A DNA stretch of 64,000 bases from Octopus sinensis (GCF_006345805.1 NC_043007.1:75702001-75766000); one strand, 5' to 3'. Counted from the stretch's first letter, positions 12,365-64,000 are shown. Program-made: numbers and translations. Notes: generated by a model not told the origin, from the letters alone.

Positions 12365-13570
12365 GTGCAGTGTTGGACCATGGCCTGTCAGTCGCGGTTT
12401 CTCTTACATATTGACATGCGTCGATCGTTTCTCTCGTTGGCCTGAAGCCAATCCAATAGTGGCCATTTCGGCTGAGTCAGTTGCTCGAATTTTCGTTTCT
12501 AACTGGATTGCTCGCTTTAGTATCCCAGCTTAAATAACCACTAATCGTGGACGCCGGTTCGGAGCTTCTTTAGTTCGTGAATTGTCACGAATCCTAGGCG
12601 TTCGTCACATTCGTACGACCAGCTATCATCCAGCTTCCAACGGATGGTCGAACGTTTTCACAGGCAACCGAAGGCCGCTCTACGCGCCACTCCTGATTCG
12701 CAGTCTTGGACAGAATTCCTGCCTATCGTTCTTCTTGGTTGTCGCACTGCTGTTAAAACAGTCTTAGGTTTCTCCTCTGCTGAACGCCTTTACGGTACCA
12801 TCCTGGCACTCCCTGATACAATTCATTGCATCCTGATACAATGTCGTATGTCACCAGACTTCGCTCATATTTCTCAAGTCTTCCACCCATGCATCTGCGT
12901 GGCCAGTCTATTCCCTCTCACGTCTCACCGGACATTGACAAACGGACTGATGTTTTTGTTCGGGATGGTTCTGTTAGAGGACCTCTCGTTTCTCCTTATA
13001 AAGGACCATTTCGTGTGCTATCGCGCACACTCAAAGCTTTTAGTCTCGACATCAATGGTCGGGCAGAGACCGTGTCAGTCGACAGACTTAGAAGGGCACA
13101 TTCTGAGGTTTCCACACCCTTTGGTGACACCCCAGCCATGCCCACCTTTGATCCTTTACAACCACCTACACATCCACCTGCACGTGCACTTTTGACCACA
13201 CCATCACCTCCACCTCCACCTTCGTCGCCACAACCTAACACGAACAAACCCTATGTCACCAGGACAGGTCGCACTGTGCACTGGCCAAAAAACTCACCAG
13301 AACTATTTATATTTAACCCTTTTCTTTTTTCTTCCTGTGACAGACAATTGTTTTCTCGTGTGCTGAACAATTCCAATGCCTTGCCATTGAACTTTGTAAA
13401 AAAAATATTTTGTGCATGCTCCTTTTATATTGCTTGTAATTATTTTTCTCAACTTATCACATTTTGTATCATATTTTGTACCACATCTTGTTGTTTGCGA
13501 TCGGTGGCCCATCTTTGCTTTCTTGTGCCTGCTCCAGTCATTTTAATTTAGTACTAGCGTTCTCAAGGGG
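12365..13570 (+). mobile_element. Ty3/Gypsy integrase 3' fragment (frameshifted; extra 16-bp deletion in this copy)
   Basis: YILTCVDRFSRWPEA, WIARF, IRTTSYHPASNGMVERFHRQ, PYKGPFRVL, ETVSVDRLRRA; PPT-like CAAGGGGGA near 13565; no LTR pair recognised. Confidence 0.9.
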
Positions 13571-13587
13571 GATCAAATAGTACTTTT

Positions 13588-14560
13588 TCGGCCCATAACG
13601 CTGCTGAACACAGACTTCAAAATGTTGGCCAAGGTGTCAACGAAGAGTTTGGCGCTTGTCGTCGATGTGCAAATATGTTGTTGGCGATGTGCAAATATGC
13701 ACTATCCCAAGCAGATCCATCCACGACAACCTCCATCTCATGCGACACATTATAGACAGGGTGGGGAATGAAGGTGGCATGGGTAGGGTGTTGATCAGTT
13801 TAGATCAGTTTAAAGACTTTGATAGGGTCGACCACCAATACTTGACGTCCGTTCTCACGGCAGCCGGTTTCGGTCCCGTTTTCCGTGGCTGTATCGCAGC
13901 AATGTACAGTGTCATCTGCTCGATAGTTCGGGTAAATGGGTACTTATCAGAATCATTCAGCATTATGCACTCGATCAGTCAAGAGTATCCTCTCTCGTCT
14001 CTCTTGTATGTACTGGTTCTAGAGACACTAGCGCGGAAATTGGAAGCGTTGAGAGGCATTCTGCGCGAACTAGGACGTGGGGGAACTGTGTCGGCATACG
14101 CGAACGACGTCATCGTCATAATGTTGAACATCAAGCACATGGACCTGGTCGGCATAGCTCTAAAAAATACGAGGCGTTGACAGGAGCAAAAATTAACCAG
14201 AAGTCAGTGGGCCAGCGACTTAAATTGCTTGGGGTCTGGTTCTGGTCCAGATCTCCAGATGGAGAAGAAATTGGGACAAAGTGACGAGCTGAGTTGCCAA
14301 TCTCACTCAGAAATGGGCTGTGAGGAAGTGTTCCCTGAAAGTTCGGGTGGAGGTGGCGAATGCTTACATCGCATCCATCATCTACTACCGTCTCACTGTC
14401 CTGACTTGTCCAGGTTCGATTCCGACCAAACTGGAGCACCTACTTTTCCGCTTTCTGTGGAAGGGACGCGTTCCACTGGTCAGGCGCTCCATTTGCTAAA
14501 TGGAGGACTGGGCATGTCGTGGCTTTGATGCGCAGACATGTGCTGATCTTACAACATCTC
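13588..14560 (+). mobile_element. L1/Tx1-clade RT fragment
   Basis: RPITLLNTDFKMLAK, degenerate DxxKAFDRVDH (DQFKDFDRVDH), QGxPLS (QEYPLSSLLY), YADD (YANDV). Confidence 0.85.
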
Positions 14561-14723: not shown

Positions 14724-15120
14724 TGTTTCTTTATTGCCCACAAGGGGCTAAACGTAGAGGGGGACAAACAAGGACAGACAAACGGATTAAATCGATTAAA
14801 TCGACCCCAGTGCGTAACTGGTACTTAATTTATCGACCCCGAAAGGATGAAAGGCAAAGTCGACTTCGGCGGAATTTGAACTCAGAACGTAACGACAGAC
14901 GAAATACCTATTTCTTTACTACCCACACGGGGCTAAACACAGAGAGGACAAACAAGGATAGGCAAACGGATTAAGTCGATTATATTGACCTCAGTGTGTA
15001 ACTTATTTAATCGACCCCGAAAGGATGAAAGGCAAAGTCGACCTCGGTGGAATTTGAACTCAGAACGCAGCGGCAGACGAAATACCGCAAAGAATTTCGC
15101 CCGGCATGCTAACGTTTCTG
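14724..15120 (-). mobile_element. Dimeric tRNA-derived SINE with 15-bp TSD
   Basis: GCAGGTCCTCACCCT at 14709..14723 and 15132..15146; two tandem bodies as in 734..1064. Confidence 0.85.
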
Positions 15121-22569: not shown

Positions 22570-22710
22570 TTATTTCATTTCATTGAATTCTTGAGGCATA
22601 TATGGGTCAGCAACATTTGGAGAATAATGAGTAATTGGTGAGTAGTGTGTATTAATTGACGGATTCACGAATTCAGTAGCCTGGTTCTGATGGATAACAA
22701 CTACATTACT
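22570..22710 (-). CDS. CD20/MS4A-like tetraspan gene, copy 1, coding exon 5 (terminal)
   Basis: Polypyrimidine tract TTTTTTTTTCTTTGCTTCTACAG then SNVVVIHQNQATEFVNPSINTHYSPITHYSPNVADPYMPQEFNEMK*; 141 nt, phase 0. Confidence 0.82.
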   Translation of the reverse strand, partial: SNVVVIHQNQATEFVNPSINTHYSPITHYSPNVADPYMPQEFNEMK

Positions 22711-22999
22711 CTGTAGAAGCAAAGAAAAAAAAATTATTAAAGAAATACTGAATTTCTTTAGAAACAAAAAAATAATAAACAACTCTAAAATCATTCCAAG
22801 AGAAATTAAAGAATACCTTGATTTGCATCTATTTTTCAATGACATTCATACATAGTAAATCTTGTGTGTAGTTAGATGTACTATTGCGATTGTTGAATTA
22901 AAAGCTGCATATAGAGTATCATCTTCCAGTGAAGTGGAGCAAATAATATAAACTTGTGTTTACCATAATTTCTCCTGTCTCTATATATACATATATATA

Positions 23000-23169
23000 C
23001 TTTATAATTAGGGTTCAGCAATGATATGCTTTACCACATACCAAAGTTTAGAAATAGCAGCCAAAAAACCTTAGCTATTTCTTCTACTTTAAAAAGGAAC
23101 TCCCAGAAAAACTATTTATAAACTTTGGTATGTGGTAAAGCATATCTTTGCTGAACCCTAATTATAAAG
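23000..23169. mobile_element. 170-bp hairpin MITE with TA flanks (Tc1/mariner-type) in intron 4
   Basis: ~58-bp arms CTTTATAATTAGGGTTCAGCAA(T/A)GATATGCTTTACCACATACCAAAGTTTA with about one mismatch in the first 50 bp; TA on both sides. Confidence 0.88.
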
Positions 23170-23692
23170 TATTACTTAAGTTTACCGTGAAAGTTTTTCA
23201 TGCCGAATTCTACTTGGTGAAGTTATTGATTACTTCTTAATTAATTAATTTTACCCTTTGTTGGATAAGAACAGCAATGCAAAAAATGGAGGTCAAATGG
23301 TAAGCCTGCATGATGTCCAACATCATGTTCTCCATCTTCATGTATTTTTTCCTTTCACCATAATCCTACTATCTCCTGATATGTAACCTTGAGCACTACC
23401 TTTACAGCTTATTTCTCTAGCATATCATATACTCCCCATTTCCCATCTAGTTTTGGATTTTTTATTTTCCCTTTTCACCTATCTCTTTATGGTTCTGAAA
23501 ACAGAATTAAACCCGAATCTTGTATCCTACAGAGTTGGATGTCACACATGGAATCTCAACATCATGTAACCTGTTCTATGGCAGGGACATAGATCAGAAG
23601 TCACAAAATATTTCCAAATCTAGGATGTAAATGGAATGAACTTTGCCTCTTATTACACAATTATATTTATCAAATGAGTAAACTATAGTTAC

Positions 23693-23814
23693 CTTTGCTT
23701 GTGAGCAGCAGCAGCAAATGGATGAAGAGACAATAGCCAAAACAAATTCCGCAAACATAGCAAAGGATCCAACACAAAATAAAGGATAATAACTTTTATA
23801 ACGAGAAACATTGC
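23693..23814 (-). pseudogene. Tetraspan gene copy 1, exon 4 (TM4) with 1-nt deletion causing a frameshift
   Basis: TTTTACAG acceptor and AAG|GTAACT donor; 122 nt versus 123 nt in copy 2. FAEFVLAIVSSSICCCCSQAK is out of frame relative to exon 3. Confidence 0.78.
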
Positions 23815-25122
23815 CTGTAAAACAAAAAATTTTAATGAGAAAAAGTGAAAGAAATATGTGATAATCTTACAGTACAGGGTTATCTTTTCAGATTTTTCAA
23901 GCAATGACTTTGCATTTTTGATAATCTTTATTGGTATTAAAAGTTATAAATGCAGTCACTTAATCTTTTACAAGTTTCAGTCACTGGTCTGCAGCCATGT
24001 CCAGAATAATCCCACAACACCACCATCAACTGTTGCACATTGCTGTCTACTGCTCATAGGACCAGCTATCTAGTTTCCAAAGCATATAAGGGACTGAGAT
24101 CAAAACATTTCCCCTGAATGGGATGCGATTTCATCACAGGAGGAACATAAAATGAAGTGTTTTGCTCAAAACACAATGTGCTACCTGATTCAAGAATTGA
24201 GGGCACAATCACTAGGTCAACTAACTTTATATTAAATAGAGTTGATTTTTAAAAAGATTCTTTTACTAGTTTCAGTCAATGGCCTGCAGCCATGCTCAAC
24301 TCATTTTAAAGTTTAGAGCCATAATCTAAAGATCTTCCTAATCACTGTTTGGTCCACTAGTGCAAATCAGTCACTGATGTTGACTGTTTTTTTAGTTAAC
24401 TAAAAGAAACAGGTTTTGAATCTGCCCAGGGTTATCTCTCTCTGGTATTTTCCATTGAGGAAGGCTAAAGAGCCAGAAATGTGTGTCTGGGAATCTGATA
24501 CGGAGAAGCACTGGGCAGATATGGTGCTTTCACACCTCTTGGAGAGAATTCTTTTCTCCAGGGTAACTACAATGAATTTGCCGTTAGAAGTCATATATCA
24601 CAAACATATTTTAACAAACCTAAAGTTCACACACACACACATATGATAGACTTCTTTAAGTTTCCATCAATAAAATCCACTCACAAGCCTGCAGTCAGCC
24701 CGAGGCTATAGAAGAATACACTTGCCCAACATGCAATGCAGTGGTTGAGAAGGAAACTTCTTAACACACAGCCATGCCATTATTTGGCTCTTTTTACAGT
24801 TTATTTATCTGAAAGAATATTAAAAGGTTTGTTTTCTTTTCTATAAAGTCTGTTACAAGATATTTTCCTAATATAGCTGAAAAAGGCTCCATAGTTACAA
24901 AGCTTAAAATGTTTTGATAAAAGGTATGATAGTGAAATAACATTAGAAAACCTGTTCATCCAAAAACCAAGAACAATAATTAAGTTACAATGTCTTTTAT
25001 TCTAGACAGCTAAGAAGTATAATTGCTTTTGTTCTGATTTTTCCCCATCATATAAAGTACCTTACTTCATTAGGCATCAGTAATCTCTGCACAAAAAACA
25101 AACGCACATATAATATACTTAC

Positions 25123-25212
25123 AATCCAAGTTGCATGGCCAGAAAGGGCACTCATTCCAACAATTGAAAAGATAGATGCTGACAAAATGGCAAGGACCAT
25201 GTAGGTAATTTT
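25123..25212 (-). CDS. Tetraspan gene copy 1, coding exon 3 (TM3)
   Basis: (T)n CAG acceptor, ATT|GTAAGT donor; 90 nt; KITYMVLAILSASIFSIVGMSALSGHATWI. Confidence 0.88.
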
Positions 25213-25739
25213 CTGAAAAAAAAAAAAAAATTTTAAAGCATTTTATTTAGGTTTTACAGTTATGTATGTGTGGTGGTATATAGACACATACATACACACA
25301 TGGGGGTAAGGATATGTGCATGTGTGAGTTTGAGTCAAAAAGAGAAAAACAGATCTGTTTAGCACTAGAGATGCAGATTTATTCATTGATAAATAGACCG
25401 ATTATAAAAATAAAAGTTATTTATAATACCAATCCATGACTGATCCTTTTTTTTAACTGAGCCCCAGGACGTAACTAAATACAGGAAGGTAGCACATAGT
25501 CACTCTAATGGATTCTATCAAATTATTATCTTTTCTGAGTATATTAAAGAAATACTGTTTATCATAGAAGGAATGGTGTTAGGCAAATGACATTTTTCTT
25601 TTAGGTTCATATCTCAGGAAATCTATTATCTTTTGTCAGAGAGAGAGGAGAATCTAATATTTTATGTGATCTGTGGCAGAAAGTCACAAATGATACCATT
25701 CTTTGCTAACTTTGTCTTTCACTCCTCAGAGATCATAAG

Positions 25740-26650
25740 TACGAGGGGTATCAAAAGGTTCCTTGGCTAGTTATGTTTAATAAAAAATATCTTATTTACT
25801 CTCTTTTACTTGTTTCAGTCATTTGGCTGTGGCCATGCTGGAGCACCGCCTTTAGTTGAGCAAATTGACCCCAGGACTTATTTTTTGTAAGCCTAGTACT
25901 TATTCTATTGGTGTCTTTTGCCGAACAGCTAAGTTACGGGGATGTGAACACACCAGCATTGGTTGTCAAGTGATGTTGAGGGGACAAACACAAGCATACA
26001 CACACCAACACTTACATATATATATATATGCATATATACGACGGGCCTCCTTCAGCTTCTGTCTATCAAATCCACTCACAAGGCCTTGGTCGGCCTGAGG
26101 CTATAGTAGAAGACACTTGCCCAAGGTGCCATGCAGTGGGACTGAGCCTGGAACCATGTGGTTCGTAAGCAAGCTACTTACCACTCAGCCACTCATACAT
26201 TTTAACATCATCTCTTTTGAAATAGCCACCTTGTACAGCAATATACTGGTCCCAGCATTTCTGCCACTTTTGGGAATCTGACCTGGAAGTCATTTTTTGT
26301 GTGTGGGTTGAGGCCCTTCTGTGATCTGCACTGGATCTCGACAATGGTGTTAAAACAGCAACCTTTGAGCAGCGTTTTCATCTTGGGGGAAGAGATGGAA
26401 GTTTGCAGGTGCTAAATCTGGTGAAAAGAGCGTGTGGAAGCAATACCATGTTTTTGGCAATAAACTCAAAAGTGAGAAGAGTTTGATGACAGGGCACATT
26501 GTTGTCATGAAGAATCCAATTCTTTGCGCTCCACAGGTCTGGTTGCTTTTGTCAAATGTCCTCCCTCAAACGCTTAAAAATATCACAGTAGAACTCTCAA
26601 TTGACAGTCTGGCCCTGGAGGACAAATTCTTGATGCACATTACCATATTT
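25740..26650 (-). mobile_element. Mariner transposase 3' remnant with one TIR, interrupted by a SINE
   Basis: TA|CGAGGGGTATCAAAAGGTTCC TIR. Degenerate VHQEFVLQGQTVN, WILHDNN (LHHDNA), FSPDLAPANFHLFP (YSPDLAPxDFxLF). Confidence 0.88.
25795..26193 (-). mobile_element. Near full-length tRNA/CORE-type SINE
   Basis: Reverse complement of 26711..27124 from head to tail. Confidence 0.9.
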
Positions 26651-26710
26651 CCATGGGTGATGCTCATGGCAGGTCTTCCAGGGACACACTTTTACTTTTG
26701 AAGCACCTGT

Positions 26711-27124
26711 GGCGCAGGAGTGGCTGTGTGGTAAGTAGCTTGTTTACCAACCACATGGTTCTGGGTTCAGTCCCACTGCATGGCACCTTGGGCAAGTGTC
26801 TTCTACTATAGCCTTGGGCCAACCAAAGCCTTGTGAGTGAATTTGGTAGATGGAAACTGAAAGAAGCCCGTCGTATATATGTATATATATATGTGCTTGT
26901 GTGTGTTTGTGTCTGTGTTTGTCCCCCTAGCATTGCTTGACAACCGATGCTGGTGTGTTTATGTCCCCGTAACTTAGCGGTTCGGCAAAAGAGACCGATA
27001 GAATAAGTACTGGGCTTACAAAAGAATAAGTCCCGGGGTCGAGTTGCTCGATTAAAGGCGGTGCTCCAGCATGGCCGCAGTCAAATGACTGAAACGAGTA
27101 AAAGAGTAAAGAGTAAAAGAGAGT
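26711..27124 (+). mobile_element. Full-length tRNA/CORE-type SINE
   Basis: GGCGCAGGAGTGGCTGTGTGGTAAG (A box), GGGTTCAGTCCC (B box), ACCTTGGGCAAGT (MIR CORE-like), TA/TG linker, (GAGTAAA)n tail. Confidence 0.9.
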
Positions 27125-28073
27125 GCCACACGTAACATTGCGTACAACTACCTCAATAGTGTTTGTAATGAGCACTCAGAGTTTGTTATGACACAGCTCT
27201 GTTATGCTTGGAACGACAATTTAAAAGTGGTATAATGACACAACTATAGCAAAAATATACAGCTTGGTGGTGGTTTGATTAAAACAGGCTGTTTTAATGA
27301 TAATGAGCAGCGGTAGCTGTTGCTTTACATTCACAGCTCAGAAGTGGTTGTAATGACAGCATAATTGTGATGGGTAGCAGCTGATGTGAAGGAGCATGGC
27401 TAAGTGGTTAGCGTACTCAACACATGACTAAGATCATGACTTTGATTCTTGGTAGCACAAAAACATTACCAAGAAGAGCAGCAACATTGTCCTATAATCC
27501 ACACATGCATGCCTGATCTGTGAACTGGTTTGCAAATCTTTTGTAGGACCAAAATATCACATCCAAGCTGAATAAATTGAATGGGATGTTGACACTGAAA
27601 GCTATGGGAGAATATATATGTATATATACTCACACATGTGCATGTGTTTCTGTGAATTCGTATTTCCCTCACATTAGTAAACAATAACATCCTGATGGTG
27701 CTGTTTGCTTGCAGACCACCAGGAGAACATATTGGGGTTTTTGACATGTCTTGATATATTGAGCAAGCTGTGCTGTTTATTACTTGACAGACTGAAAAAT
27801 AATTCCTTTGCTCGGAAGCAAGTGGAGTTGGTGACAGGAAGGGCATCCAGCTGTAAAATACTCTAGCCAAATGCACTCCAACATTTGTAAGTAATACACT
27901 AGTATTTGTTAATTCTGCCAAGAGCATGGTCTACCACTGGAAAACTGGATAAATATAGCATTTTCTATAGTGTTACTATTTCTGATAAGTAATAACTAGA
28001 TGCTTTTTAATTGTAAACATTAAACAGACTGAAAATTTGAACAGAAAAGATTAATAGTCAGAGAAATTTTTAC

Positions 28074-28145
28074 CATTCTCCTGGTTTGTAATTCTGTATT
28101 TGACTTGTGACCAGCAAGAATTCCAAAGATGCCAACTGCGATAAC
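28074..28145 (-). CDS. Tetraspan gene copy 1, coding exon 2 (end of TM2 and loop)
   Basis: TTTTGTTTTGTTTAG acceptor, ATG|GTAAAA donor; 72 nt; VIAVGIFGILAGHKSNTELQTRRM. Confidence 0.87.
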
Positions 28146-28235
28146 CTAAACAAAACAAAAAATGTACAATTAAATGTAAAATTTTAAGATAAGATAGTCA
28201 GATAATTAATTAATTAATTAATGTATGTATGTATA

Positions 28236-28284
<49 letters not shown>

Positions 28285-28289
28285 TAGTG

Positions 28290-28730
28290 AGTTAGCTGAG
28301 TGAGAAGTGCAGCTGGTGCTTTCTTCCTAGTAAGGCAACTGCAGAAGTATTTAGCCAAAAGTAATCTGCTGCACTTGGCATTTATTGACATAGAGAAAGC
28401 AAATAAGTCTCTTGCTTTCTGATGTGATGGTTGCTGAAGAAGCGAGGGTGTTGTCCACACAGTGAAAGCTAATAAGTACAGCAACAAATTTAGTGTGCAG
28501 CTAGGAGCTCACCAGGGTTTGATTCTCAGTCTCCTCCTATTTATCTTTTAGGCTATAACAGAGGAGTTTAAGGCTGGTTGTCCACGGAACTCCTCTCTGC
28601 TGCTAATCTTGTTATTTAAACTGAATCTGTAGTAGAATTAGAAAAGAAATTCCAGGTGTAGAAGCAAAACCTGGATTTAAAGGGCTTCAACATCAATTTA
28701 GCAGAAACCAAAATTCTAGTTAGCAGACAG
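28290..28730 (+). mobile_element. Degenerate RTE-clade RT fragment
   Basis: LHLAFIDIEKA, LGAHQGLILSLLLFI (GVHQGSVLSPLLF), ELL...L remnants. Confidence 0.7.
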
Positions 28731-29149
28731 ACAGGATGCTAATTCCTCCAGTAAAATGGTCATTTAATTGTGTACATATCATAAACTATGCACACATAAT
28801 AGTAGACTTTGTGTCAGTTGCACAGAAACAATAAACACTATTGCCGATAAAATTTGTAAAAAAATCCTTTAAATCAAGCAGTGAACAAACACGTTATCCT
28901 CCTATAACTGACTTGATTCTTTTTCTAAACCCACATAACTTAATTACTGAGAAATTGGAAGTGTGTTTCAATCATTGTTAGGGTGTATAAATCTGTCCCT
29001 GAGAGGGATGATGTAGTAATTAGGATGTTCACAAGCAAACATTCAAGCAGATATTACACAAGGAAATAAGCAAACAAAGCCAGTTTAAAGAGGAAAAAAT
29101 CAAAGATCTGGGAAAGAAGCTGATGAAGAAGGGAATTATCGCAGAGCCA

Positions 29150-29650
29150 AGGGTGCAACCAGCCCACCTATGCGTACCTTCCCTTCATTGGACAGACACT
29201 GCTTGCGAAGACCTGTTGAGGCAAGTGAAATCGGAATCGAAATCAAATTCGCTGACTAGCATCTGTGCTAATGGAGCTCTAAAAGCACCATCTGAGCATG
29301 ATTGTTGCCAGAGGGGCTAACTGGCGTTCGTGCCGGTGGCACATAAAAATCCCCATTTGAGCGTGATCGTTACCAGCGTTGCCTTAGCGGCACTTGTGCA
29401 GGTGACATGTAAAAAAAAAACACAATTTCCCGTGACCGTTGCCCTACCGCCTGACTGGCCCTCATGCTAGTGGCACGTATAAGCACCCACTACACTCTAA
29501 AAGTGGTTGGCATTAGGAAGGGCATCCAACTGTAGACACTCTGCCAAATCAAGATTGGAGACTGGTGCAGCCATCTGGTTCGCTAGTCCTCAGTCAAATC
29601 GTCCAACCCATGCTAGCATGGAAAGTGGACGTTAAACGACGATGATGATG
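29150..29650 (+). mobile_element. RTE-type LINE 3' UTR with (GAT)n tail
   Basis: Homologous to 31590..32145: GAAGACCTGTTGAG, GGTGGCACRTAAAA repeats, AGGAAGGGCATCCA, AACCCATGCTAGCATGGAAA..GTTAAACGATGATGAT. Confidence 0.8.
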
Positions 29651-30349
29651 AATTTTATATTCCTCAGTACTCTACTCCACTCAGTTAAGGGAGCCTTGCT
29701 TTGGGGGTACTTGATGCCATGAAAAAAGCACCCTGTACACTCTGTGAAGTAGTTGACATTAGGAAGAGCATCCAACCATAGAAATCATGCCAAAGAAGAC
29801 ATTGGGGCTCAACAAAGTCCCCTCATTCACCAGTTTATGTTGAACCATCAAACCCTAAAAAGGGATGTTAAAATGACAATGATGATTATAATTGTGTATA
29901 ATGATAGAATATGAGATACTGAGAAAAAATATTAAATAAAACATACACAGTTGAGAACATTATCATCTATGGGCATTTATTTACTCTTTGTTGTAGTAAA
30001 GCAATACATTTTAAAGTGCTTCATATCTGCTATAAAATACCTTATTTGCAGTTTAAGGTTGAGAGAATTTCCAAACACTATTCTATGCAAAGTTCCAATA
30101 TTCATTGCTATAAGCAAACATTTCACAAAACAATAGTTAAGCATGAGATAACAAAAACAGAAGCATCATTTTCTATGTTGGCAGGAGTTGGACGATTTGA
30201 TAAGAGCTGCCCCAGGTTCTATTGTCTATTTTGGCATGGTGTCTATAGTTGGATGCCTTTCCCAGTGCCAATCACTTTGCAAAGTGTACTGGGGTGCTTT
30301 TTATGTGGCCCTGTCACTAGTGCTGTTTATGAGTATTAACTGAAAAATT

Positions 30350-30769
30350 GGATCTTTTCGGTTTGAACGGCAGTTTTTAACATAATTTCTAGGTAACTAA
30401 AAAATTTTAAACTTTGTATACTGGTAGAATGTGTTTATAAAACATATTTTTCTCTTGGCTTTATTGAGAAAATTCTATAGTTTGTAAGATATTTGTTGTT
30501 TTTTTTCTCTTCAATTTCTGCAATTTCAACCAATCACTGACGTCCATTGAGGTAAAAAACATTCTGTGCCGTATGAATATGTCCCTCGTTTAAGAAACAG
30601 ATTGGGTTTATTTACATTTGTGAAGAAAAAAAAGATACCCTTCCACCCCACCCCACCCCTAACCCTAAAACAGATTGAAATGCAATAGATCGATACTAGG
30701 GTCATAATTATGGGTGACAATTTCATATGACACTGCTAGAAAAAACTGCCGTTCAAACCGAAAAGATTT
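30350..30769. mobile_element. 420-bp MITE, GG terminus, 8-bp TSD (Merlin-like by inference) in intron 1
   Basis: TSD GAAAAATT at 30342..30349 and 30770..30777; ~27-bp TIR ATCTTTTCGGTTTGAACGGCAGTTTTT. Confidence 0.88.
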
Positions 30770-30877
30770 GAAAAATTTAGGTGTATTTCCATATATTTTT
30801 GATAGTTGTCATAAAAACCGATATTAGTTATGTAACCATCCTTATTAGGATAGAGAAATGTAAAAATCAGTACTTAC

Positions 30878-31054
30878 CCATAGACTTACAATACATGCTG
30901 CAGCAGAGGTAACATTAGACAAATGTCCAGTGGGTTGGTACTGTAATATTTTTGTTGAAAATCCCACCATTGAAATAATGAAACACAAAATTCCAATACC
31001 CAAATGAAACGCTCCCGTTATGGTCATAGCCATGTACTGGAAACCAGCAATCAT
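30878..31054 (-). CDS. Tetraspan gene copy 1, coding exon 1 (TM1, loop, start of TM2); exon begins at 31078 with 24 nt of 5' UTR
   Basis: TTTTTTTTCCTTTTATTTTTAG acceptor, in-frame TAA before the ATG, TGG|GTAAGT donor. MIAGFQYMAMTITGAFHLGIGILCFIISMVG...AAACIVSLW resembles the MS4A TM1 motif LGxxQIxxG. Confidence 0.85.
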
Positions 31055-31129
31055 TTTTGATGGTTATGTGAAGCTTATCTAAAAATAAAAGGAAAAAAAA
31101 ATTTCAAATTAGTTAGTAAAAGAAAACTA

Positions 31130-45348: not shown

Positions 45349-46570
45349 GTGCAGTGTTGGACCATGGCCTGTCAGTCGCGGTTTCTCTTACATATTGACA
45401 TGCGTCGATCGTTTCTCTCGTTGGCCTGAAGCCAATCCAATAGTGGCCATTTCGGCTGAGTCAGTTGCTCGAATTTTCGTTTCTAACTGGATTGCTCGCT
45501 TTAGTATCCCAGCTTAAATAACCACTAATCGTGGACGCCGGTTCGGAGCTTCTTTAGTTCGTGAATTGTCACGAATCCTAGGCGTTCGTCACATTCGTAC
45601 GACCAGCTATCATCCAGCTTCCAACGGATGGTCGAACGTTTTCACAGGCAACCGAAGGCCGCTCTACGCGCCACTCCTGATTCGCAGTCTTGGACAGAAT
45701 TCCTGCCTATCGTTCTTCTTGGTTGTCGCACTGCTGTTAAAACAGTCTTAGGTTTCTCCTCTGCTGAACGCCTTTACGGTACCATCCTGGCACTCCCTGA
45801 TACAATGTTGGCGCCAGACAATTCATTGCATCCTGATACAATGTCGTATGTCACCAGACTTCGCTCATATTTCTCAAGTCTTCCACCCATGCATCTGCGT
45901 GGCCAGTCTATTCCCTCTCACGTCTCACCGGACATTGACAAATGGACTGATGTTTTTGTTCGGGATGGTTCTGTTAGAGGACCTCTCGTTTCTCCTTATA
46001 AAGGACCATTTCGTGTGCTATCGCGCACACTCAAAGCTTTTAGTCTCGACATCAATGGTCGGGCAGAGACCGTGTCAGTCGACAGACTTAGAAGGGCACA
46101 TTCTGAGGTTTCCACACCCTTTGGTGACACCCCAGCCATGCCCACCTTTGATCCTTTACAACCACCTACACATCCACCTGCACGTGCACTTTTGACCACA
46201 CCATCACCTCCACCTCCACCTTCGTCGCCACAACCTAACACGAACAAACCCTATGTCACCAGGACAGGTCGCACTGTGCACTGGCCAAAAAACTCACCAG
46301 AACTATTTATATTTAACCCTTTTCTTTTTTCTTCCTGTGACAGACAATTGTTTTCTCGTGTGCTGAACAATTCCAATGCCTTGCCATTGAACTTTGTAAA
46401 AAAAATATTTTGTGCATGCTCCTTTTATATTGCTTGTAATTATTTTTCTCAACTTATCACATTTTGTATCATATTTTGTACCACATCTTGTTGTTTGCGA
46501 TCGGTGGCCCATCTTTGCTTTCTTGTGCCTGCTCCAGTCATTTTAATTTAGTACTAGCGTTCTCAAGGGG
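45349..46570 (+). mobile_element. Ty3/Gypsy integrase fragment, counterpart of 12365..13570
   Basis: 307-aa ORF 45628..46551, continuous where copy 1 is frameshifted. Confidence 0.9.
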
Positions 46571-46587
46571 GATCAAATAGTACTTTT

Positions 46588-47560
46588 TCGGCCCATAACG
46601 CTGCTGAACACAGACTTCAAAATGTTGGCCAAGGTGTCAACGAAGAGTTTGGCGCTTGTCGTCGATGTGCAAATATGTTGTTGGCGATGTGCAAATATGC
46701 ACTATCCCAAGCAGATCCATCCACGACAACCTCCATCTCATGCGACACATTATAGACAGGGTGGGGAATGAAGGTGGCATGGGTAGGGTGTTGATCAGTT
46801 TAGATCAGTTTAAAGACTTTGATAGGGTCGACCACCAATACTTGACGTCCGTTCTCACGGCAGCCGGTTTCGGTCCCGTTTTCCGTGGCTGTATCGCAGC
46901 AATGTACAGTGTCATCTGCTCGATAGTTCGGGTAAATGGGTACTTATCAGAATCATTCAGCATTATGCACTCGATCAGTCAAGAGTATCCTCTCTCGTCT
47001 CTCTTGTATGTACTGGTTCTAGAGACACTAGCGCGGAAATTGGAAGCGTTGAGAGGCATTCTGCGCGAACTAGGACGTGGGGGAACTGTGTCGGCATACG
47101 CGAACGACGTCATCGTCATAATGTTGAACATCAAGCACATGGACCTGGTCGGCATCGCTCTAAAAAATACGAGGCGTTGACAGGAGCAAAAATTAACCAG
47201 AAGTCAGTGGGCCAGCGACTTAAATTGCTTGGGGTCTGGTTCTGGTCCAGATCTCCAGATGGAGAAGAAATTGGGACAAAGTGACGAGCTGAGTTGCCAA
47301 TCTCACTCAGAAATGGGCTGTGAGGAAGTGTTCCCTGAAAGTTCGGGTGGAGGTGGCGAATGCTTACATCGCATCCATCATCTACTACCGTCTCACTGTC
47401 CTGACTTGTCCAGGTTCGAGTCCGACCAAACTGGAGCACCTACTTTTCCGCTTTCTGTGGAAGGGACGCGTTCCACTGGTCAGGCGCTCCATTTGCTAAA
47501 TGGAGGACTGGGCATGTCGTGGCTTTGATGCGCAGACATGTGCTGATCTTACAACATCTC
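46588..47560 (+). mobile_element. L1/Tx1 RT fragment, counterpart of 13588..14560
   Basis: ORF 46656..47180. Confidence 0.85.
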
Positions 47561-47723: not shown

Positions 47724-48120
47724 TGTTTCTTTATTGCCCACAAGGGGCTAAACGTAGAGGGGGACAAACAAGGACAGACAAACGGATTAAATCGATTAAA
47801 TCGACCCCAGTGCGTAACTGGTACTTAATTTATCGACCCCGAAAGGATGAAAGGCAAAGTCGACTTCGGCGGAATTTGAACTCAGAACGTAACGACAGAC
47901 GAAATACCTATTTCTTTACTACCCACACGGGGCTAAACACAGAGAGGACAAACAAGGATAGGCAAACGGATTAAGTCGATTATATTGACCTCAGTGTGTA
48001 ACTTATTTAATCGACCCCGAAAGGATGAAAGGCAAAGTCGACCTCGGTGGAATTTGAACTCAGAACGTAGCGGCAGACGAAATACCGCAAAGAATTTCGC
48101 CCGGCGTGCTAACGTTTCTG
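47724..48120 (-). mobile_element. Dimeric SINE, counterpart of 14724..15120
   Basis: Same 15-bp TSD and flanking hairpin. Confidence 0.85.
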
Positions 48121-55467: not shown

Positions 55468-55608
55468 TTATTTCATTTCATTGAATTCTTGAGGCATATA
55501 TGGGTCAGCAACATTTGGAGAATAATGAGTAATTGGTGAGTAGTGTGTATTAATTGACGGATTCACGAATTCAGTAGCCTGGTTCTGATGGATAACAACT
55601 ACATTACT
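55468..55608 (-). CDS. CD20/MS4A-like tetraspan gene, copy 2, coding exon 5
   Basis: 141 nt, identical to copy 1 exon 5; CTACAG acceptor. Confidence 0.85.
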   Translation of the reverse strand, partial: SNVVVIHQNQATEFVNPSINTHYSPITHYSPNVADPYMPQEFNEMK

Positions 55609-56586: not shown

Positions 56587-56709
56587 CTTTGCTTGTGAGC
56601 AGCAGCAGCAAATGGATGAAGAGACAATAGCCAAAACAAATTCCGCAAACATAGCAAAGGATCCAACACAAAATAAAGGATAATAACTGTCATAACGAGA
56701 AGACATTGC
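56587..56709 (-). CDS. Tetraspan gene copy 2, coding exon 4 (TM4, in frame)
   Basis: 123 nt, phase 0-0; AMSSRYDSYYPLFCVGSFAMFAEFVLAIVSSSICCCCSQAK; TTTTACAG acceptor, AAG|GTAACT donor. The EFxxAIxSxxxCC pattern is typical of CD20-like TM4. Confidence 0.88.
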
Positions 56710-58048: not shown

Positions 58049-58138
58049 AATCCAAGTTGCATGGCCAGAAAGGGCACTCATTCCACCAATTGAAAAGATA
58101 GATGCTGACAAAATGGCAAGGACCATGTAGGTAATTTT
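58049..58138 (-). CDS. Tetraspan gene copy 2, coding exon 3 (TM3)
   Basis: 90 nt; KITYMVLAILSASIFSIGGMSALSGHATWI. Confidence 0.88.
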
Positions 58139-58661: not shown

Positions 58662-59570
58662 TACGAGGGGTATCAAAAGGTTCCTTGGCTAGTTATGTTT
58701 AATAAAAAATAACTAATTTACTCTCTTTTACTTGTTTCAGTCATTTGGCTGGGGCCATGCTGGAGCACTGCCTTTAGTTGAGCAAATTGACCCCAGGACT
58801 TATTCTTTGTAAGCCTAGTACTTATTCTATTGGTGTCTTTTGCCGAACAGCTAAGTTACGGGGATGTGAACACACCAGCATTGGTTGTCAAGTGATGTCG
58901 AGGGGACAAATACAAGCATACACACACCAACACTTACATATATATATATGCATATATACGATGGGCCTCCTTCAGCTTCTGTCTATCAAACCCACTCACA
59001 AGGCCTTGGTCGGCCTGAGGCTATAGTAGAAGACACTTGCCCAAGGTGCCATGCAGTGGGACTGAGCCTGGAACCATGTGGTTCGTAAGCAAGCTACATA
59101 CCACTCAGCCACTCATACATTTTAACATCATCTCTTTTGAAATAGCCACCTTGTACAGCAATATACTGGTCCCAGCATTTCTGCCACTTTTGGGAATCTG
59201 ACCTGGAAGTCATTTTTTGTGTGTGGGTTGAGGCCCTTCTGTGATCTGCACTGGGTCTCGACAATGGTGTTAAAACAGCAACCTTTGAGCAGCGTTTTCA
59301 TCTTGGGGGAAGAGATGGAAGTTTGCAGGTGCTAAATCTGGTGAAAAGAGCGTGTGGAAGCAATACCATGTTTTTGGCAATAAACTCAAAGTGAGAAGAG
59401 TTTGATGACAGGGCACATTGTTGTCATGAAGAATCCAATTCTTTGCGCTCCACAGGTCTGGTTGCTTTTGTCAAATGTCCTCCCTCAAACGCTTAAAAAT
59501 ATCACAGTAGAACTCTCAATTGACAGTCTGGCCCTGGAGGACAAATTCTTGATGCACATTACCATATTTC
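58662..59570 (-). mobile_element. Mariner remnant, counterpart of 25740..26650
   Basis: TIR at 58664; NVHQEFVLQGQTVN visible in track ORF 59516..59851. Confidence 0.88.
58717..59113 (-). mobile_element. SINE, counterpart of 25795..26193
   Basis: Colinear identity. Confidence 0.9.
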
Positions 59571-59628
59571 CATGGGTGATGCTCATGGCAGGTCTTCCAG
59601 GGACACACTTTACTTTTGAAGCACCTGT

Positions 59629-60040
59629 GGCGCAGGAGTGGCTGTGTGGTAAGTAGCTTGTTTACCAACCACATGGTTCTGGGTTCAGTCCCACTGCATG
59701 GCACCTTGGGCAAGTGTCTTCTACTATAGCCTTGGGCCAACCAAAGCCTTGTGAGTGAATTTGGTAGATGGAAACTGAAAGAAGCCCGTCGTATATATGT
59801 ATATATATATGTGCTTGTGTGTGTTTGTGTCTGTGTTTGTCCCCCTAGCATTGCTTGACAACCGATGCTGGTGTGTTGATGTCCCCGTAACTTAGCGGTT
59901 CGGCAAAAGAGACCGATAGAATAAGTACTGGGCTTACAAAAGAATAAGTCCCGGGGTCGAGTTGCTCGATTAAAGGCGGTGCTCCAGCATGGCCGCAGTC
60001 AAATGACTGAACGAGTAAAAGAGTAAAGAGTAAAGAGAGT
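59629..60040 (+). mobile_element. SINE, counterpart of 26711..27124
   Basis: Colinear identity. Confidence 0.9.
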
Positions 60041-60984: not shown

Positions 60985-61056
60985 CATTCTCCTGGTTTGT
61001 AATTCTGTATTTGACTTGAGACCAGCAAGAATTCCAAAGATGCCAACTGCGATAAC
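60985..61056 (-). CDS. Tetraspan gene copy 2, coding exon 2
   Basis: 72 nt; VIAVGIFGILAGLKSNTELQTRRM. Confidence 0.87.
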
Positions 61057-61737: not shown

Positions 61738-62213
61738 ACACTATTGCCGATAAAATTTGTAAAAAAATCCTTTAATCAAGCAGTGAACAAACACGTTATC
61801 CTCCTATAACTGACTTGATTCTTTTTCTAAACCCACATAACTTAATTACTGAGTAATTGGAAGTGTGTTTCAATCATTGTTAGGGTGTATAAATCTGTCC
61901 CTGAGAGGGATGATGTAGTAATTAGGATGTTCACAAGCAAACATTCAAGCAGATATTACACAAGGAAATAAGCAATACACTATTGCCGAAAAAATTTAGT
62001 AAAAAAATCCTTTAATCAAGCAGTGAACAAACACGTTATCCTCTATAACTGACTTGATTCTTGTTCTAAACCCACATGAACTTATTACTGAGTAATTGGA
62101 AGTGTGTTTCAATCATTGTTAGGGTGTATAAATCTGTCCCTGAGAGGGATGATGTAGTAATTAGGATGTTCACAAGCAAACATTCAAGCAATATTACACA
62201 AGGAAATAAGCAA
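61738..62213. repeat. ~239-bp local tandem duplication found only in copy 2
   Basis: ACACTATTGCCGA starts at 61738 and 61977; single copy at ~28835..29075. Confidence 0.9.
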
Positions 62214-62289
62214 CAAAGCCAGTTTAAAGAGGAGAAAAAATCAAAGATCTGGGAAAGAAGCTGATGAGGAAGGGAATTATCGCAGAGCC

Positions 62290-62790
62290 AAGGGTGCAAC
62301 CAGCCCACCTTTGCGTACCTTCCCTTCATTGGACACTGCTTGCGAAGACCTGTTGAGGCAAGTGAAATCGGAATCGAAATCAAATTCGCTGACTAGCATC
62401 TGTGCTAATGGAGCACTAAAAGCACCATCTGAGCGTGATTGTTGCCAGAGGAGCCAACTGGCGTTCGTGCCGGTGGCACGTAAAAATCCCCATTTGAGCG
62501 TGATCGTTACCAGCGTTGCCTTAGCGGTACTTGTGCAGGTGACATGTAAAAAAAAAACACGATTTCCCATGACCTTTGCCCTACCGCCTGACTGGCCCTC
62601 ATGCCAGTGGCACGTAAAAGCACCCACTACACTCTCAAAGTGGTTGGCATTAGGAAGGGCATCCAACTGTAGACACTCTGCCAAATCAAGATTGGAGACT
62701 GGTGCAGCCATCTGGTTCGCTAGTCCTCAGTCAAATCGTACAACCCATGCTAGCATGGAAAGTGGACGTTAAACGATGATGATGATGAAT
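62290..62790 (+). mobile_element. RTE-type 3' UTR, counterpart of 29150..29650
   Basis: Colinear, with noticeably more substitutions than elsewhere. Confidence 0.8.
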
Positions 62791-63476
62791 TTTATATTGC
62801 TCAGTACTCCACTCCACTCAGTTAAGGGAGCCTTGCTTTGGGGGTACCTGGTGTTCTTGCCTGTCCTTGGTGCCATGAAAAAAGCACCCTGTACACTCTG
62901 TGAAGTAGCTGACATTAGGAAGAGCATCCAACCATAGAAATCATGCCAAAGAAGACATTGGGGCTCAACAAAGTCCCCTCATTCACCAGTTTATGTTGAA
63001 CCATCAAACCCTAAAAAGGGATGTTAAAATGACAATGATGATTATAATTGTGTATAATGATAGAATATGAGATACTGAGAAAAATATTAAATAAAACATA
63101 CACAGTTGAGAACATTATCATCTATGGGCATTTATTTACTCTTTGTTGTAGTAAAGCAATACATTTTAAAGTGCTACATATCTGCTATAAAATACCTTAT
63201 TTGCAGTTAAGGTTGAGAGAATTTCCAAACACTATTCTATGCAAAGTTCCAATATTCATTGCTATAAGCAAACATTTCACAAAACAATAGTTAAGCATGA
63301 GATAACAAAAACAGAAGCATCATTTTCTATGTTGGCAGGAGTTGGACGATTTGATAAGAGCTGCCCCAGGTTCTATTGTCTGTTTTGGCATGGTGTCTAT
63401 AGTTGGATGCCCTTCCCAGTGCCAATCACTTTGCAAAGTGTACTGGTTGCTTTTTATGAGTATTATCTGAAAAATT

Positions 63477-63868
63477 GGATCTTTTCGGTTTGAACAGCAG
63501 TTTTTAACATAATTTCTAGGTAACTAAAAAATTTTAAACTTCATATACTGGTAGAACATGTTTATAAAACATCTTTTTCTCTTGGCTATATTGGGAAAAT
63601 TCTATAGTTTGCAAGATATTTGTTGTATTTTTTTCTTCAATTTCTGCAATTTCAACCAATCACTGACGTCCATTGAGGTAAAAAAACATTCTGTGCCGTA
63701 TGAATATGTCCCTTGTTTAAAAAACAGATTGGGTTTATTTACATTTGTGAAGAAAAAGACACCCTAAAACAGATTGAAATGCAATAGATCGATACTAGGG
63801 TCATAACTATAGGTGACAATTTCATATGACACCGCTAGAAAAAACTGCCGTTCAAACCAAAAAGATTC
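63477..63868. mobile_element. MITE, counterpart of 30350..30769
   Basis: Same GAAAAATT TSD; small internal deletion. Confidence 0.88.
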
Positions 63869-63984
63869 GAAAAATTTAGGTGTATTTCCATATATTTTTG
63901 AAAAGTATATAGTTGTCATAAAAACCGATATTAGTTATGTAACCATCCTTATTAGGATAGAGAAATGTAAAAATCAGTACTTAC

Positions 63985-64000
63985 CCATAGACTTACAATA
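63985..64000 (-). CDS. Tetraspan gene copy 2, 3' tip of coding exon 1 (truncated by window edge)
   Basis: Encodes ...IVSLW followed by the GTAAGT donor; identical to 30878..30893. Confidence 0.8.

Follow-up and report, generated by a model that had tools for sequence, protein, structure and literature searches.

A tandemly duplicated octopus gene for a four-helix membrane protein and its probable place among CD20-like (MS4A) proteins

Introduction

FcεRIβ, CD20 and other MS4A proteins are oligomeric membrane-organising or auxiliary subunits which tune the trafficking or signalling of receptors. Here, a window of 64,000 nucleotides from Octopus sinensis (GCF_006345805.1 NC_043007.1:75702001-75766000, a part of the chromosome referred to below as C11) was analysed, which harbors two tandem copies of a five-exon gene coding for a 200-aa protein with four predicted transmembrane helices (TM1 to TM4). 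An earlier note made from the DNA alone had described this gene as a hidden CD20/MS4A-like one (Pfam family PF04103). Judged by sequence comparison, the protein very probably belongs to a cephalopod-specific, strongly conserved and divergent clade of the metazoan CD20-like (MS4A/PF04103) superfamily. Taken as a whole, the locus is best explained, in our opinion with good likelihood, as an annotated gene residing in tandem units, a member of this CD20-like clade and of an octopod array, with a putative auxiliary role in the membrane.

In mammals, a role as odorant receptors has been reported for CD20 and further MS4A proteins (PMC11026480). The ascidian Ciona is reported to possess 29 clustered MS4A genes, several of which are enriched in palp sensory cells, and the diversity of ascidian MS4A proteins is centred on the loops, with positive selection detected in Botryllus paralogues (bioRxiv 10.1101/2022.08.15.492342). 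According to Zuccolo et al., invertebrates have no MS4A-like genes, and the similarities found in them are short and non-specific (PMC2826416). A literature search on octopus or mollusc MS4A and on the LOC identifiers given below turned up neither a study of such genes in cephalopods or molluscs nor one that mentions these loci.

Compared to the vertebrate proteins CD20 (MS4A1) and FcεRIβ (MS4A2), the octopus protein shares the predicted four-helix bundle (FcεRIβ being the first-ranked structural match in the PDB and CD20 the seventh, with weak E-values and other four-helix membrane proteins in between), the arrangement of the genes in tandem clusters, a small-x-x-polar-x-x-x-small motif in TM1 and a conserved Glu followed by V/L-A in TM4. 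It differs from them in having neither an immunoreceptor tyrosine-based activation motif (ITAM) nor a long N-terminus nor a disulphide-bonded loop 2, in its much shorter loops and in the CCCC cluster, which is absent from the mammalian CD20 consensus. With the Ciona clusters it has in common the invertebrate origin, the clustered lineage-specific expansion and the concentration of diversity in the extracellular loops; the Ciona repertoire is larger, however (29 genes versus about 12 octopus loci), and its genes have been characterised by reporter and single-cell expression in sensory palp cells, whereas the octopus array is known here from sequence.

Gene structure and products of the two copies

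All five exon peptides listed in the earlier note were found as exact minus-strand matches by six-frame matching of the window. The exons are 177, 72, 90, 123 and 138+3 nt long, the last 3 nt being the stop codon, and an in-frame TAA stands 12 nt before the start codon in exon 1. Every junction has the AG-exon-GT form and all introns are in phase 0, with the boundaries located between codons, so the five-exon GT-AG structure described in that note was reproduced exactly.

The exons belong to two gene copies, both on the minus strand. In copy 2, only the last 16 nt of exon 1 are located inside the window (63985-64000), the remainder extending past it (C11:75765985-75766161) and the exon encoding ...QYQPIGHLSN...; exon 2 (60985-61056), exon 3 (58049-58138) and exon 5 with the stop codon (55468-55608) are exact matches, and exon 4 (56587-56709), which codes for extracellular loop 2, TM4 and the CCCC cluster, is intact with its 123 nt. 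Copy 1 consists of exon 1 at 30878-31054 (177 nt, with the start codon, TM1, extracellular loop 1 containing an NVT sequon, the start of TM2 and a GT donor), exon 2 at 28074-28145 (72 nt, coding for the remaining part of TM2 and a basic cytoplasmic loop), exon 3 at 25123-25212 (90 nt, TM3), exon 4 at 23693-23814 (122 nt instead of 123) and exon 5 at 22570-22710 (138 nt plus TAA, with the same Y/P-rich tail as in copy 2). The two first exons are 1 nt apart (T42 in copy 1 versus I42 in copy 2), exons 2, 3 and 4 of copy 1 carry L72H, G101V and D120K with respect to copy 2, and the coding part of exon 5 is identical at 22573-22710 and 55471-55608. There are five coding substitutions between the copies in total, all of them nonsynonymous, a 5:0 ratio which is not significant (about p=0.25).

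Exon 4 of copy 1 bears a 1-nt deletion near 23807/23808 which shifts the frame after TM3 and thereby deprives the copy 1 product of TM4, the CCCC cluster and the tail. The frameshifted read-through is, letter for letter, isoform X3 of RefSeq O. sinensis LOC115216986 (P0006, 156 aa). The product of copy 2 shows 100% identity to an O. vulgaris 200-aa "Hypothetical predicted protein" (P0001), and the spliced product is 90% identical to the O. bimaculoides orthologue (LOC106868669). The exon and splice pattern is thus far beyond what chance would produce, given these matches to database proteins, and the locus is a genuine protein-coding gene. It was not hidden, as had been supposed, being annotated already as uncharacterised in O. 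vulgaris, O. sinensis (LOC115216986) and O. bimaculoides (LOC106868669). As for the location at 22570-31078 proposed before, the exons of copy 1 are indeed situated there, but copy 1 is frameshifted in this assembly and the intact product comes from copy 2; the 200-aa protein assembled in the earlier note is a chimera that joins exon 1 of copy 1 to exons 2-5 of copy 2, with T42I as its sole difference from the copy 2 product.

Protein features and cephalopod relatives

Twenty-five relatives were found by sequence in O. bimaculoides, O. sinensis, O. vulgaris, Argonauta hians and the cuttlefish Acanthosepion pharaonis, as well as on many transcript-like contigs; 22 of the 25 were used for the family alignment. 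None of the 25 carries a precomputed Pfam domain. The conserved core consists of MTITGxxHxxxG in TM1, SLWxIxVGIxGIxxG in TM2, KIAYMVxAILSA in TM3 and EFVLAIVSSSICCCCS at the end of TM4. Residues T13, G14, H17, G21, G64, G67, G71 and C148-150 are invariant among the 22 relatives, and E136 is nearly so.

The AlphaFold2 model built with the family alignment contains four helices at residues 5-37, 44-70, 77-116 and 120-149 with predicted local distance difference test (pLDDT) values of about 85-96, followed by a disordered tail from residue 153. The CCCC cluster is located at 147-150 and THYSP occurs twice, so that the four helices, the cluster after TM4 and the repeated tail motif mentioned in the earlier note are all present. 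Four Lys/Arg residues are found in the TM2-TM3 loop versus one in each other loop, and loop 1 contains an N-x-T sequon (NVT); with this distribution the predicted topology has both termini inside the cell and the CCCC cluster facing the cytoplasm. The model and the charge pattern together predict, as expected of CD20-like proteins, four transmembrane helices with both termini cytoplasmic.

The extracellular loops are hypervariable across the relatives, with a mean top-residue frequency of 0.27 versus 0.61-0.69 in the helices, and range in length from 9 to 30 aa (loop 1) and from 7 to 25 aa (loop 2). The O. vulgaris and O. bimaculoides orthologues show 20 scattered and mostly conservative differences. 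Despite an overall identity of 90%, 37 of the 38 tail residues 163-200 (55471-55584 and 22573-22686) are identical between the two, which argues that the tail is under constraint. A PPxY motif is present in the tail of 12 of the 22 relatives. The tail motifs YSPI and YMPQ (YxxQ-type) were also considered as SH2 or AP-2 sites and given no weight, since four-residue matches of this kind are expected by chance.

In the phylogenetic tree, the cephalopod-type sequences form a clade with 100/99 support, apart from the mollusc and Ciona CD20-like proteins, and all the named octopod sequences form a subclade inside it (96/98) with species-level orthologue pairs. The octopod expansion therefore predates the Octopus species, with the exception of the recent 33 kb units described below.

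Probable relationship to the CD20-like superfamily

The connection to CD20 runs through other invertebrates. A search with the cephalopod profile against 1.84 billion representative proteins returned 172 matches at E<=1e-3, the non-cephalopod ones including proteins from scallops, oysters, mussels, gastropods, Nematostella and Ciona, the last of which is named MS4A8 by NCBI. The best invertebrate match has an E-value of 6.6e-20 with nearly the full length covered, and the Ciona member one of 1e-9. Seventy of 111 of these intermediate proteins match PF04103 at E<=0.01 (best 1.4e-16), and five of the closest ones exceed its curated cut-off. The part of the cephalopod profile covering TM1-3 and the one covering TM4 with the CCCC cluster are each significant library-wide when used alone, so the CD20 link does not come from the cysteine run alone. 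When a profile of the 111 intermediates was in turn compared with the PDB, FcεRIβ (7.7e-17), CD20 (3.5e-9) and sarcospan (6e-4) were retrieved, and nothing outside that group scored better than 1.5e-3. Aligned with hhalign, the cephalopod alignment and that of the intermediates gave 99.9%. Homology to accepted CD20-like members was in this way obtained by iterated profile search.

The family together with its 30 nearest matches, used as a profile, placed FcεRIβ on top in the PDB (2.7e-4) and aligned to CD20 over TM1-TM3 with an hhalign probability of 76.6%. In a Foldseek search of the PDB with the AlphaFold2 model, FcεRIβ took ranks 1-2 (TM-score 0.55-0.66 on the target) and CD20 rank 7, with E-values of 0.03-0.2.

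A number of results weigh against this placement. In the PDB search with the family and its 30 nearest matches, the FcεRIβ score stands beside spurious KCNQ matches at 7e-4, that is near the noise; the Foldseek E-values are weak, with V-ATPase c subunits and synaptogyrin (rank 6) scoring similarly and interleaved with the CD20-like structures. PF04103 (gathering score 27.9 bits) gave no match to the protein at E<=10, matched none of the 22 relatives at E<=1 and left the C11 array untouched in a whole-genome search, so the match to this family on which the earlier note had staked its proposal was found neither for the protein nor for the 22 relatives nor for the locus. Searching the PDB with the cephalopod-only profile retrieved nothing relevant, and the same holds for the single protein sequence. 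The hhalign probability for the cephalopod alignment versus 22 mammalian CD20 sequences is only 1.6%, over 16 columns (the TM1 G-x-x-H-x-x-x-G). Relatives were found as uninterrupted open reading frames on 1.3-2.1 kb contigs from several sequencing runs, which look like complementary DNA and do not represent the octopus gene itself; an exact-protein look-up for transcripts of the octopus gene returned the O. vulgaris genome record only.

Direct similarity to vertebrate MS4A1-15, looked for with the 22 mammalian CD20 sequences, was not found, and in the tree the cephalopod clade stands apart from the Ciona and mollusc CD20-like proteins. Judged by these comparisons, the cephalopod clade is not orthologous to the vertebrate MS4A genes and is too divergent to be picked up by the current Pfam model. 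The CD20/MS4A-like character claimed in the earlier note thus holds at the level of the superfamily, by way of the invertebrate intermediates, but not as orthology to vertebrate MS4A, direct similarity being insignificant.

The absence of a direct PF04103 match might also mean that the protein is no CD20/MS4A homologue at all but an unrelated or convergent one of the claudin/PMP22, tetraspanin or MARVEL type, linked to CD20 by transmembrane composition, in line with the argument that what resembles MS4A in invertebrates does so over short stretches and without specificity (Zuccolo et al. 2010, PMC2826416). The UniRef name of the O. bimaculoides orthologue (P0002, LOC106868669) is "Claudin", weak tetraspanin matches occur in three relatives and a MARVEL match in one, and the synaptogyrin rank could be read in the same way. 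These families are four-pass membrane proteins of similar size, but their defining loop motifs have no room in the cephalopod loops: 7-30 aa are too short for the claudin W-GLW-C-C motif or the tetraspanin CCG domain. Claudin/PMP22 (PF00822, PF13903) matched none of the 22 relatives at E<=1, and loop 1 has no conserved Cys or Trp; tetraspanin (PF00335) matched 3 of the 22 with a best E-value of 0.0017, far below the cut-off as was the MARVEL match, with a loop 2 of 7-25 aa. In a Pfam scan of the protein and the 22 relatives, no family exceeded its own cut-off. The intermediates, on the other hand, are matched near full length with E-values down to 7e-20, are mostly PF04103-positive and are reached by both halves of the profile independently, and their own profile ranks MS4A proteins at least 13 orders of magnitude ahead of any protein that is not CD20-like. 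With all this considered, an origin outside the CD20-like superfamily appears very improbable, and the "Claudin" label looks wrong, because no claudin profile matches the 22 members and the loops cannot hold the claudin motif.

The invertebrate CD20-like set used for comparison comprises PF04103-positive, uncharacterised proteins from scallop (LOC132548162/LOC117341013), Mytilus, Saccostrea, Babylonia, Batillaria and Lymnaea, and the Ciona "MS4A8". Shared with the cephalopod proteins are the four helices, a G-x-x-[Q/H]-x-x-x-G motif in TM1, W-x-G...G in TM2, K-x-x-[FY]-M-V-x-S-I in TM3, E-F-x-x-A-I-x-S-x-S-x-C-C-C-C-S in TM4 and a P/Y-rich tail, often with PPxY. In contrast to that set, the cephalopod clade is nearly devoid of an N-terminal cytoplasmic segment, the start codon being located directly before TM1, has His in place of Gln in the TM1 motif, stays below the PF04103 threshold and forms the separate 100/99 clade. 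The scallop relative (P0033) produced no exon match when searched against the octopus genome.

Elsewhere in the genome, PF04103 gave weak scattered matches, the best being C8697:138078-138362 (+) with 34.5 bits, the sole genome site where the family exceeds its cut-off in one open frame. This site may harbor a canonical gene of the CD20-like family that has no relation to the C11 array.

The placement provides a family assignment for octopus, argonaut, cuttlefish and other cephalopod-type proteins listed as uncharacterised, including the one mislabelled "Claudin", all of which are missed by PF04103, the model used in automatic annotation. Cephalopods would thereby join the animals with clustered, lineage-specific CD20-like expansions, which bears on the claim that invertebrates have no MS4A-like genes (PMC2826416). 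At present this is an annotation improvement and no functional discovery.

The tandem units and their history

Self-BLAST divides the window into two tandem units with an offset of 32.9-34.9 kb which are mostly 97-99% identical: the one with copy 1 at 1-31100 and the one with copy 2 at 34852-64000, each with an intergenic part rich in repeats. A third unit of about 33 kb is situated left of the window (C11:75689751-75698240), its exons being 96.6-100% identical to those of copy 2; the gene in it lies about 3.8-12.2 kb left of window position 1. It bears a 1-nt deletion in exon 1 which runs into a stop. Among the three near-identical units, copy 2 is thus the only intact one in this assembly.

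The duplication is real and no assembly artefact, because the same two copies are present in the independent O. vulgaris assembly GCA_951406725.2, and the recent tandem duplication suggested in the earlier note is borne out in the form of these 33 kb units. In the four-way gene-body alignment, 61 informative sites group each of the O. sinensis copies with the corresponding one of O. vulgaris, versus 3 and 0 sites for the alternatives. Gene-body divergence is 1.1-1.7% between paralogues and 0.6-0.7% between orthologues, meaning that the duplication is older than the split of O. sinensis and O. vulgaris, although not by much.

The 5′ part of intron 1 (28835-30870 vs 61977-63990) is only about 94% identical between the units, and 42 of the 61 orthology-informative sites fall inside it. 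As exon 1 next to it is near-identical and the remaining sequence reaches 98-99% identity, the unit has a mosaic history.

In the O. vulgaris downstream copy, the orthologue of copy 1, exon 4 is intact, and a premature stop three codons ahead of the regular one limits the protein to 197 aa. Exon 1 of this copy (L031:33535-33711) contains seven substitutions within 37 nt of the part coding for loop 1, flanked by sequence only 0.2-0.6% diverged from the O. sinensis orthologue. The seven substitutions turn ILQYQPIGHLSNVT into ISEYRSFGHLSNAI, with the loss of the NVT N-glycosylation sequon, and the resulting YRSFGHLSN variant is common to this copy and the third O. sinensis unit. Such a clustered and shared variant suggests short gene-conversion tracts between the units.

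It is possible that the single-base deletions in copy 1 exon 4 and third-unit exon 1 are assembly errors in near-identical repeats, with all three units being intact and expressed. Two independent single-base deletions among three units about 98% identical to each other are a pattern typical of long-read indel error; the splice sites and the remaining reading frames are intact in both deletion-bearing units, and in O. vulgaris, exon 4 is undamaged in the orthologue of copy 1, which ends only three codons early. The deleted copy 1 base is located outside any long homopolymer, however, and RefSeq annotated the frameshifted copy 1 product unchanged (P0006). Copy 1 also bears three further nonsynonymous changes, located in helices and loop 2, and the O. 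vulgaris downstream copy has a lesion of its own together with the NVT loss, which agrees with relaxed constraint on the downstream copy. We therefore rather doubt that both deletions are errors, while granting this a sizeable chance.

The chromosomal array

An exon-by-exon search of the 2.72 Gb O. sinensis genome with the protein and a diverged paralogue as queries produced matches exclusively at C11 75.42-76.01 Mb and on the unplaced scaffolds C10884 and C11859. About 12 loci on both strands are distributed over approximately 590 kb of the one chromosome, the count being drawn from 200 kb of sequence and the matched loci, with those right of the window known from exon matches. From left to right, the array includes a partial copy with exons 3-5 only (C11:75421650-75425916, 75.42 Mb), LOC115217485 (75.46 Mb), LOC115217350 (75.60 Mb), a locus at 75.65 Mb, the three units of about 33 kb (the third unit, copy 1 and copy 2), a locus at 75.83 Mb, LOC115217703 (75.94-75.96 Mb) and LOC115216970 (76.00 Mb), the two copies on the scaffolds C10884 and C11859 being included in the count. 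The gene is accordingly a member of a clustered set of paralogues, as had been anticipated in the earlier note, and not a single-copy one.

One O. vulgaris protein of 268 aa (P0007) contains the TM2-TM4 block twice and seems to be a fused gene model that spans a partial duplicate.

Possible function

The most likely role of the octopus protein, proposed by analogy with the MS4A family including FcεRIβ and CD20, would be that of an oligomeric subunit, membrane-organising or auxiliary, which joins other receptors at the cell surface and regulates how these are trafficked or how they signal. In this view, palmitoylation (S-acylation) of the CCCC cluster would anchor the protein in the membrane, and the conserved tail would serve as a docking region, in PPxY-bearing relatives possibly for WW-domain ligases. 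Against such a mechanism in this particular gene, neither an ITAM nor a disulphide in loop 2 as in CD20 is found in it, and its tail contains no PPxY. The tail does contain one YxxΦ motif (YSPI). A scaffold or auxiliary-subunit role is proposed here tentatively, its chances being a little short of even.

The array might otherwise encode ligand-binding chemoreceptors or immune sensors of the MS4A type whose variable loops would bind chemicals or microbial molecules. The lineage-specific clustered expansion, the concentration of variation in the two extracellular loops and the all-nonsynonymous substitutions between copies 1 and 2 could be read this way, as could the clustered loop-1 change in the O. 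vulgaris downstream copy, which is partly shared with the third unit and suggests an exchange of loop variants; mammalian MS4A odorant receptors (PMC11026480) and the Ciona MS4A clusters in palp sensory cells (bioRxiv 10.1101/2022.08.15.492342) provide a precedent. Clustering and fast-evolving loops are, however, ordinary in small tetraspan families, the loops, with 9-30 and 7-25 aa, are very short and cysteine-free, about a dozen loci make a small repertoire, and the nonsynonymous excess, besides lacking significance, fits the decay of a frameshifted copy. Such a receptor function seems unlikely to us. A more specific version, in which the loops of the octopod CD20-like array have been diversified by duplication and short-tract exchange and the proteins act as ligand-sensing subunits or as co-receptors conferring specificity, in chemotactile sensing by suckers or in surveillance by haemocytes, is quite doubtful as well; if true, it would represent a protostome counterpart of the mammalian and ascidian MS4A chemosensors. 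If the array proved to be expressed in suckers, the olfactory organ or haemocytes only, it would supply a compact set of candidates for octopus sensing through proteins that are neither G-protein-coupled receptors nor of the nicotinic type.

Repeated elements in the tandem units

Each of the two units contains one open reading frame with similarity to reverse transcriptase (RVT_1, PF00078, E = 3e-9), located at 13656-14180 (+) and 46656-47180 (+), respectively. It is a retrotransposon remnant duplicated together with the gene. The open reading frames next to these fragments (12644-13551 and 45628-46551) have no Pfam match.

In intron 2 of copy 1, there is an inverted-repeat pair of about 390 bp (25801-26194 / 26718-27106), 83-90% complementary and separated by a spacer of about 520 nt, and the same pair is present in copy 2 at about 58723-60023. 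These are probably two copies of a short interspersed element in opposite orientations.

Short tandem repeats include a 178-bp unit in two copies at 14726-15086 and 47726-48086, that is in both units, a 239-bp unit in two copies with 97% identity in intron 1 of copy 2 (61738-62213), and a CATA-rich microsatellite or 121-bp array at 2291-2725.

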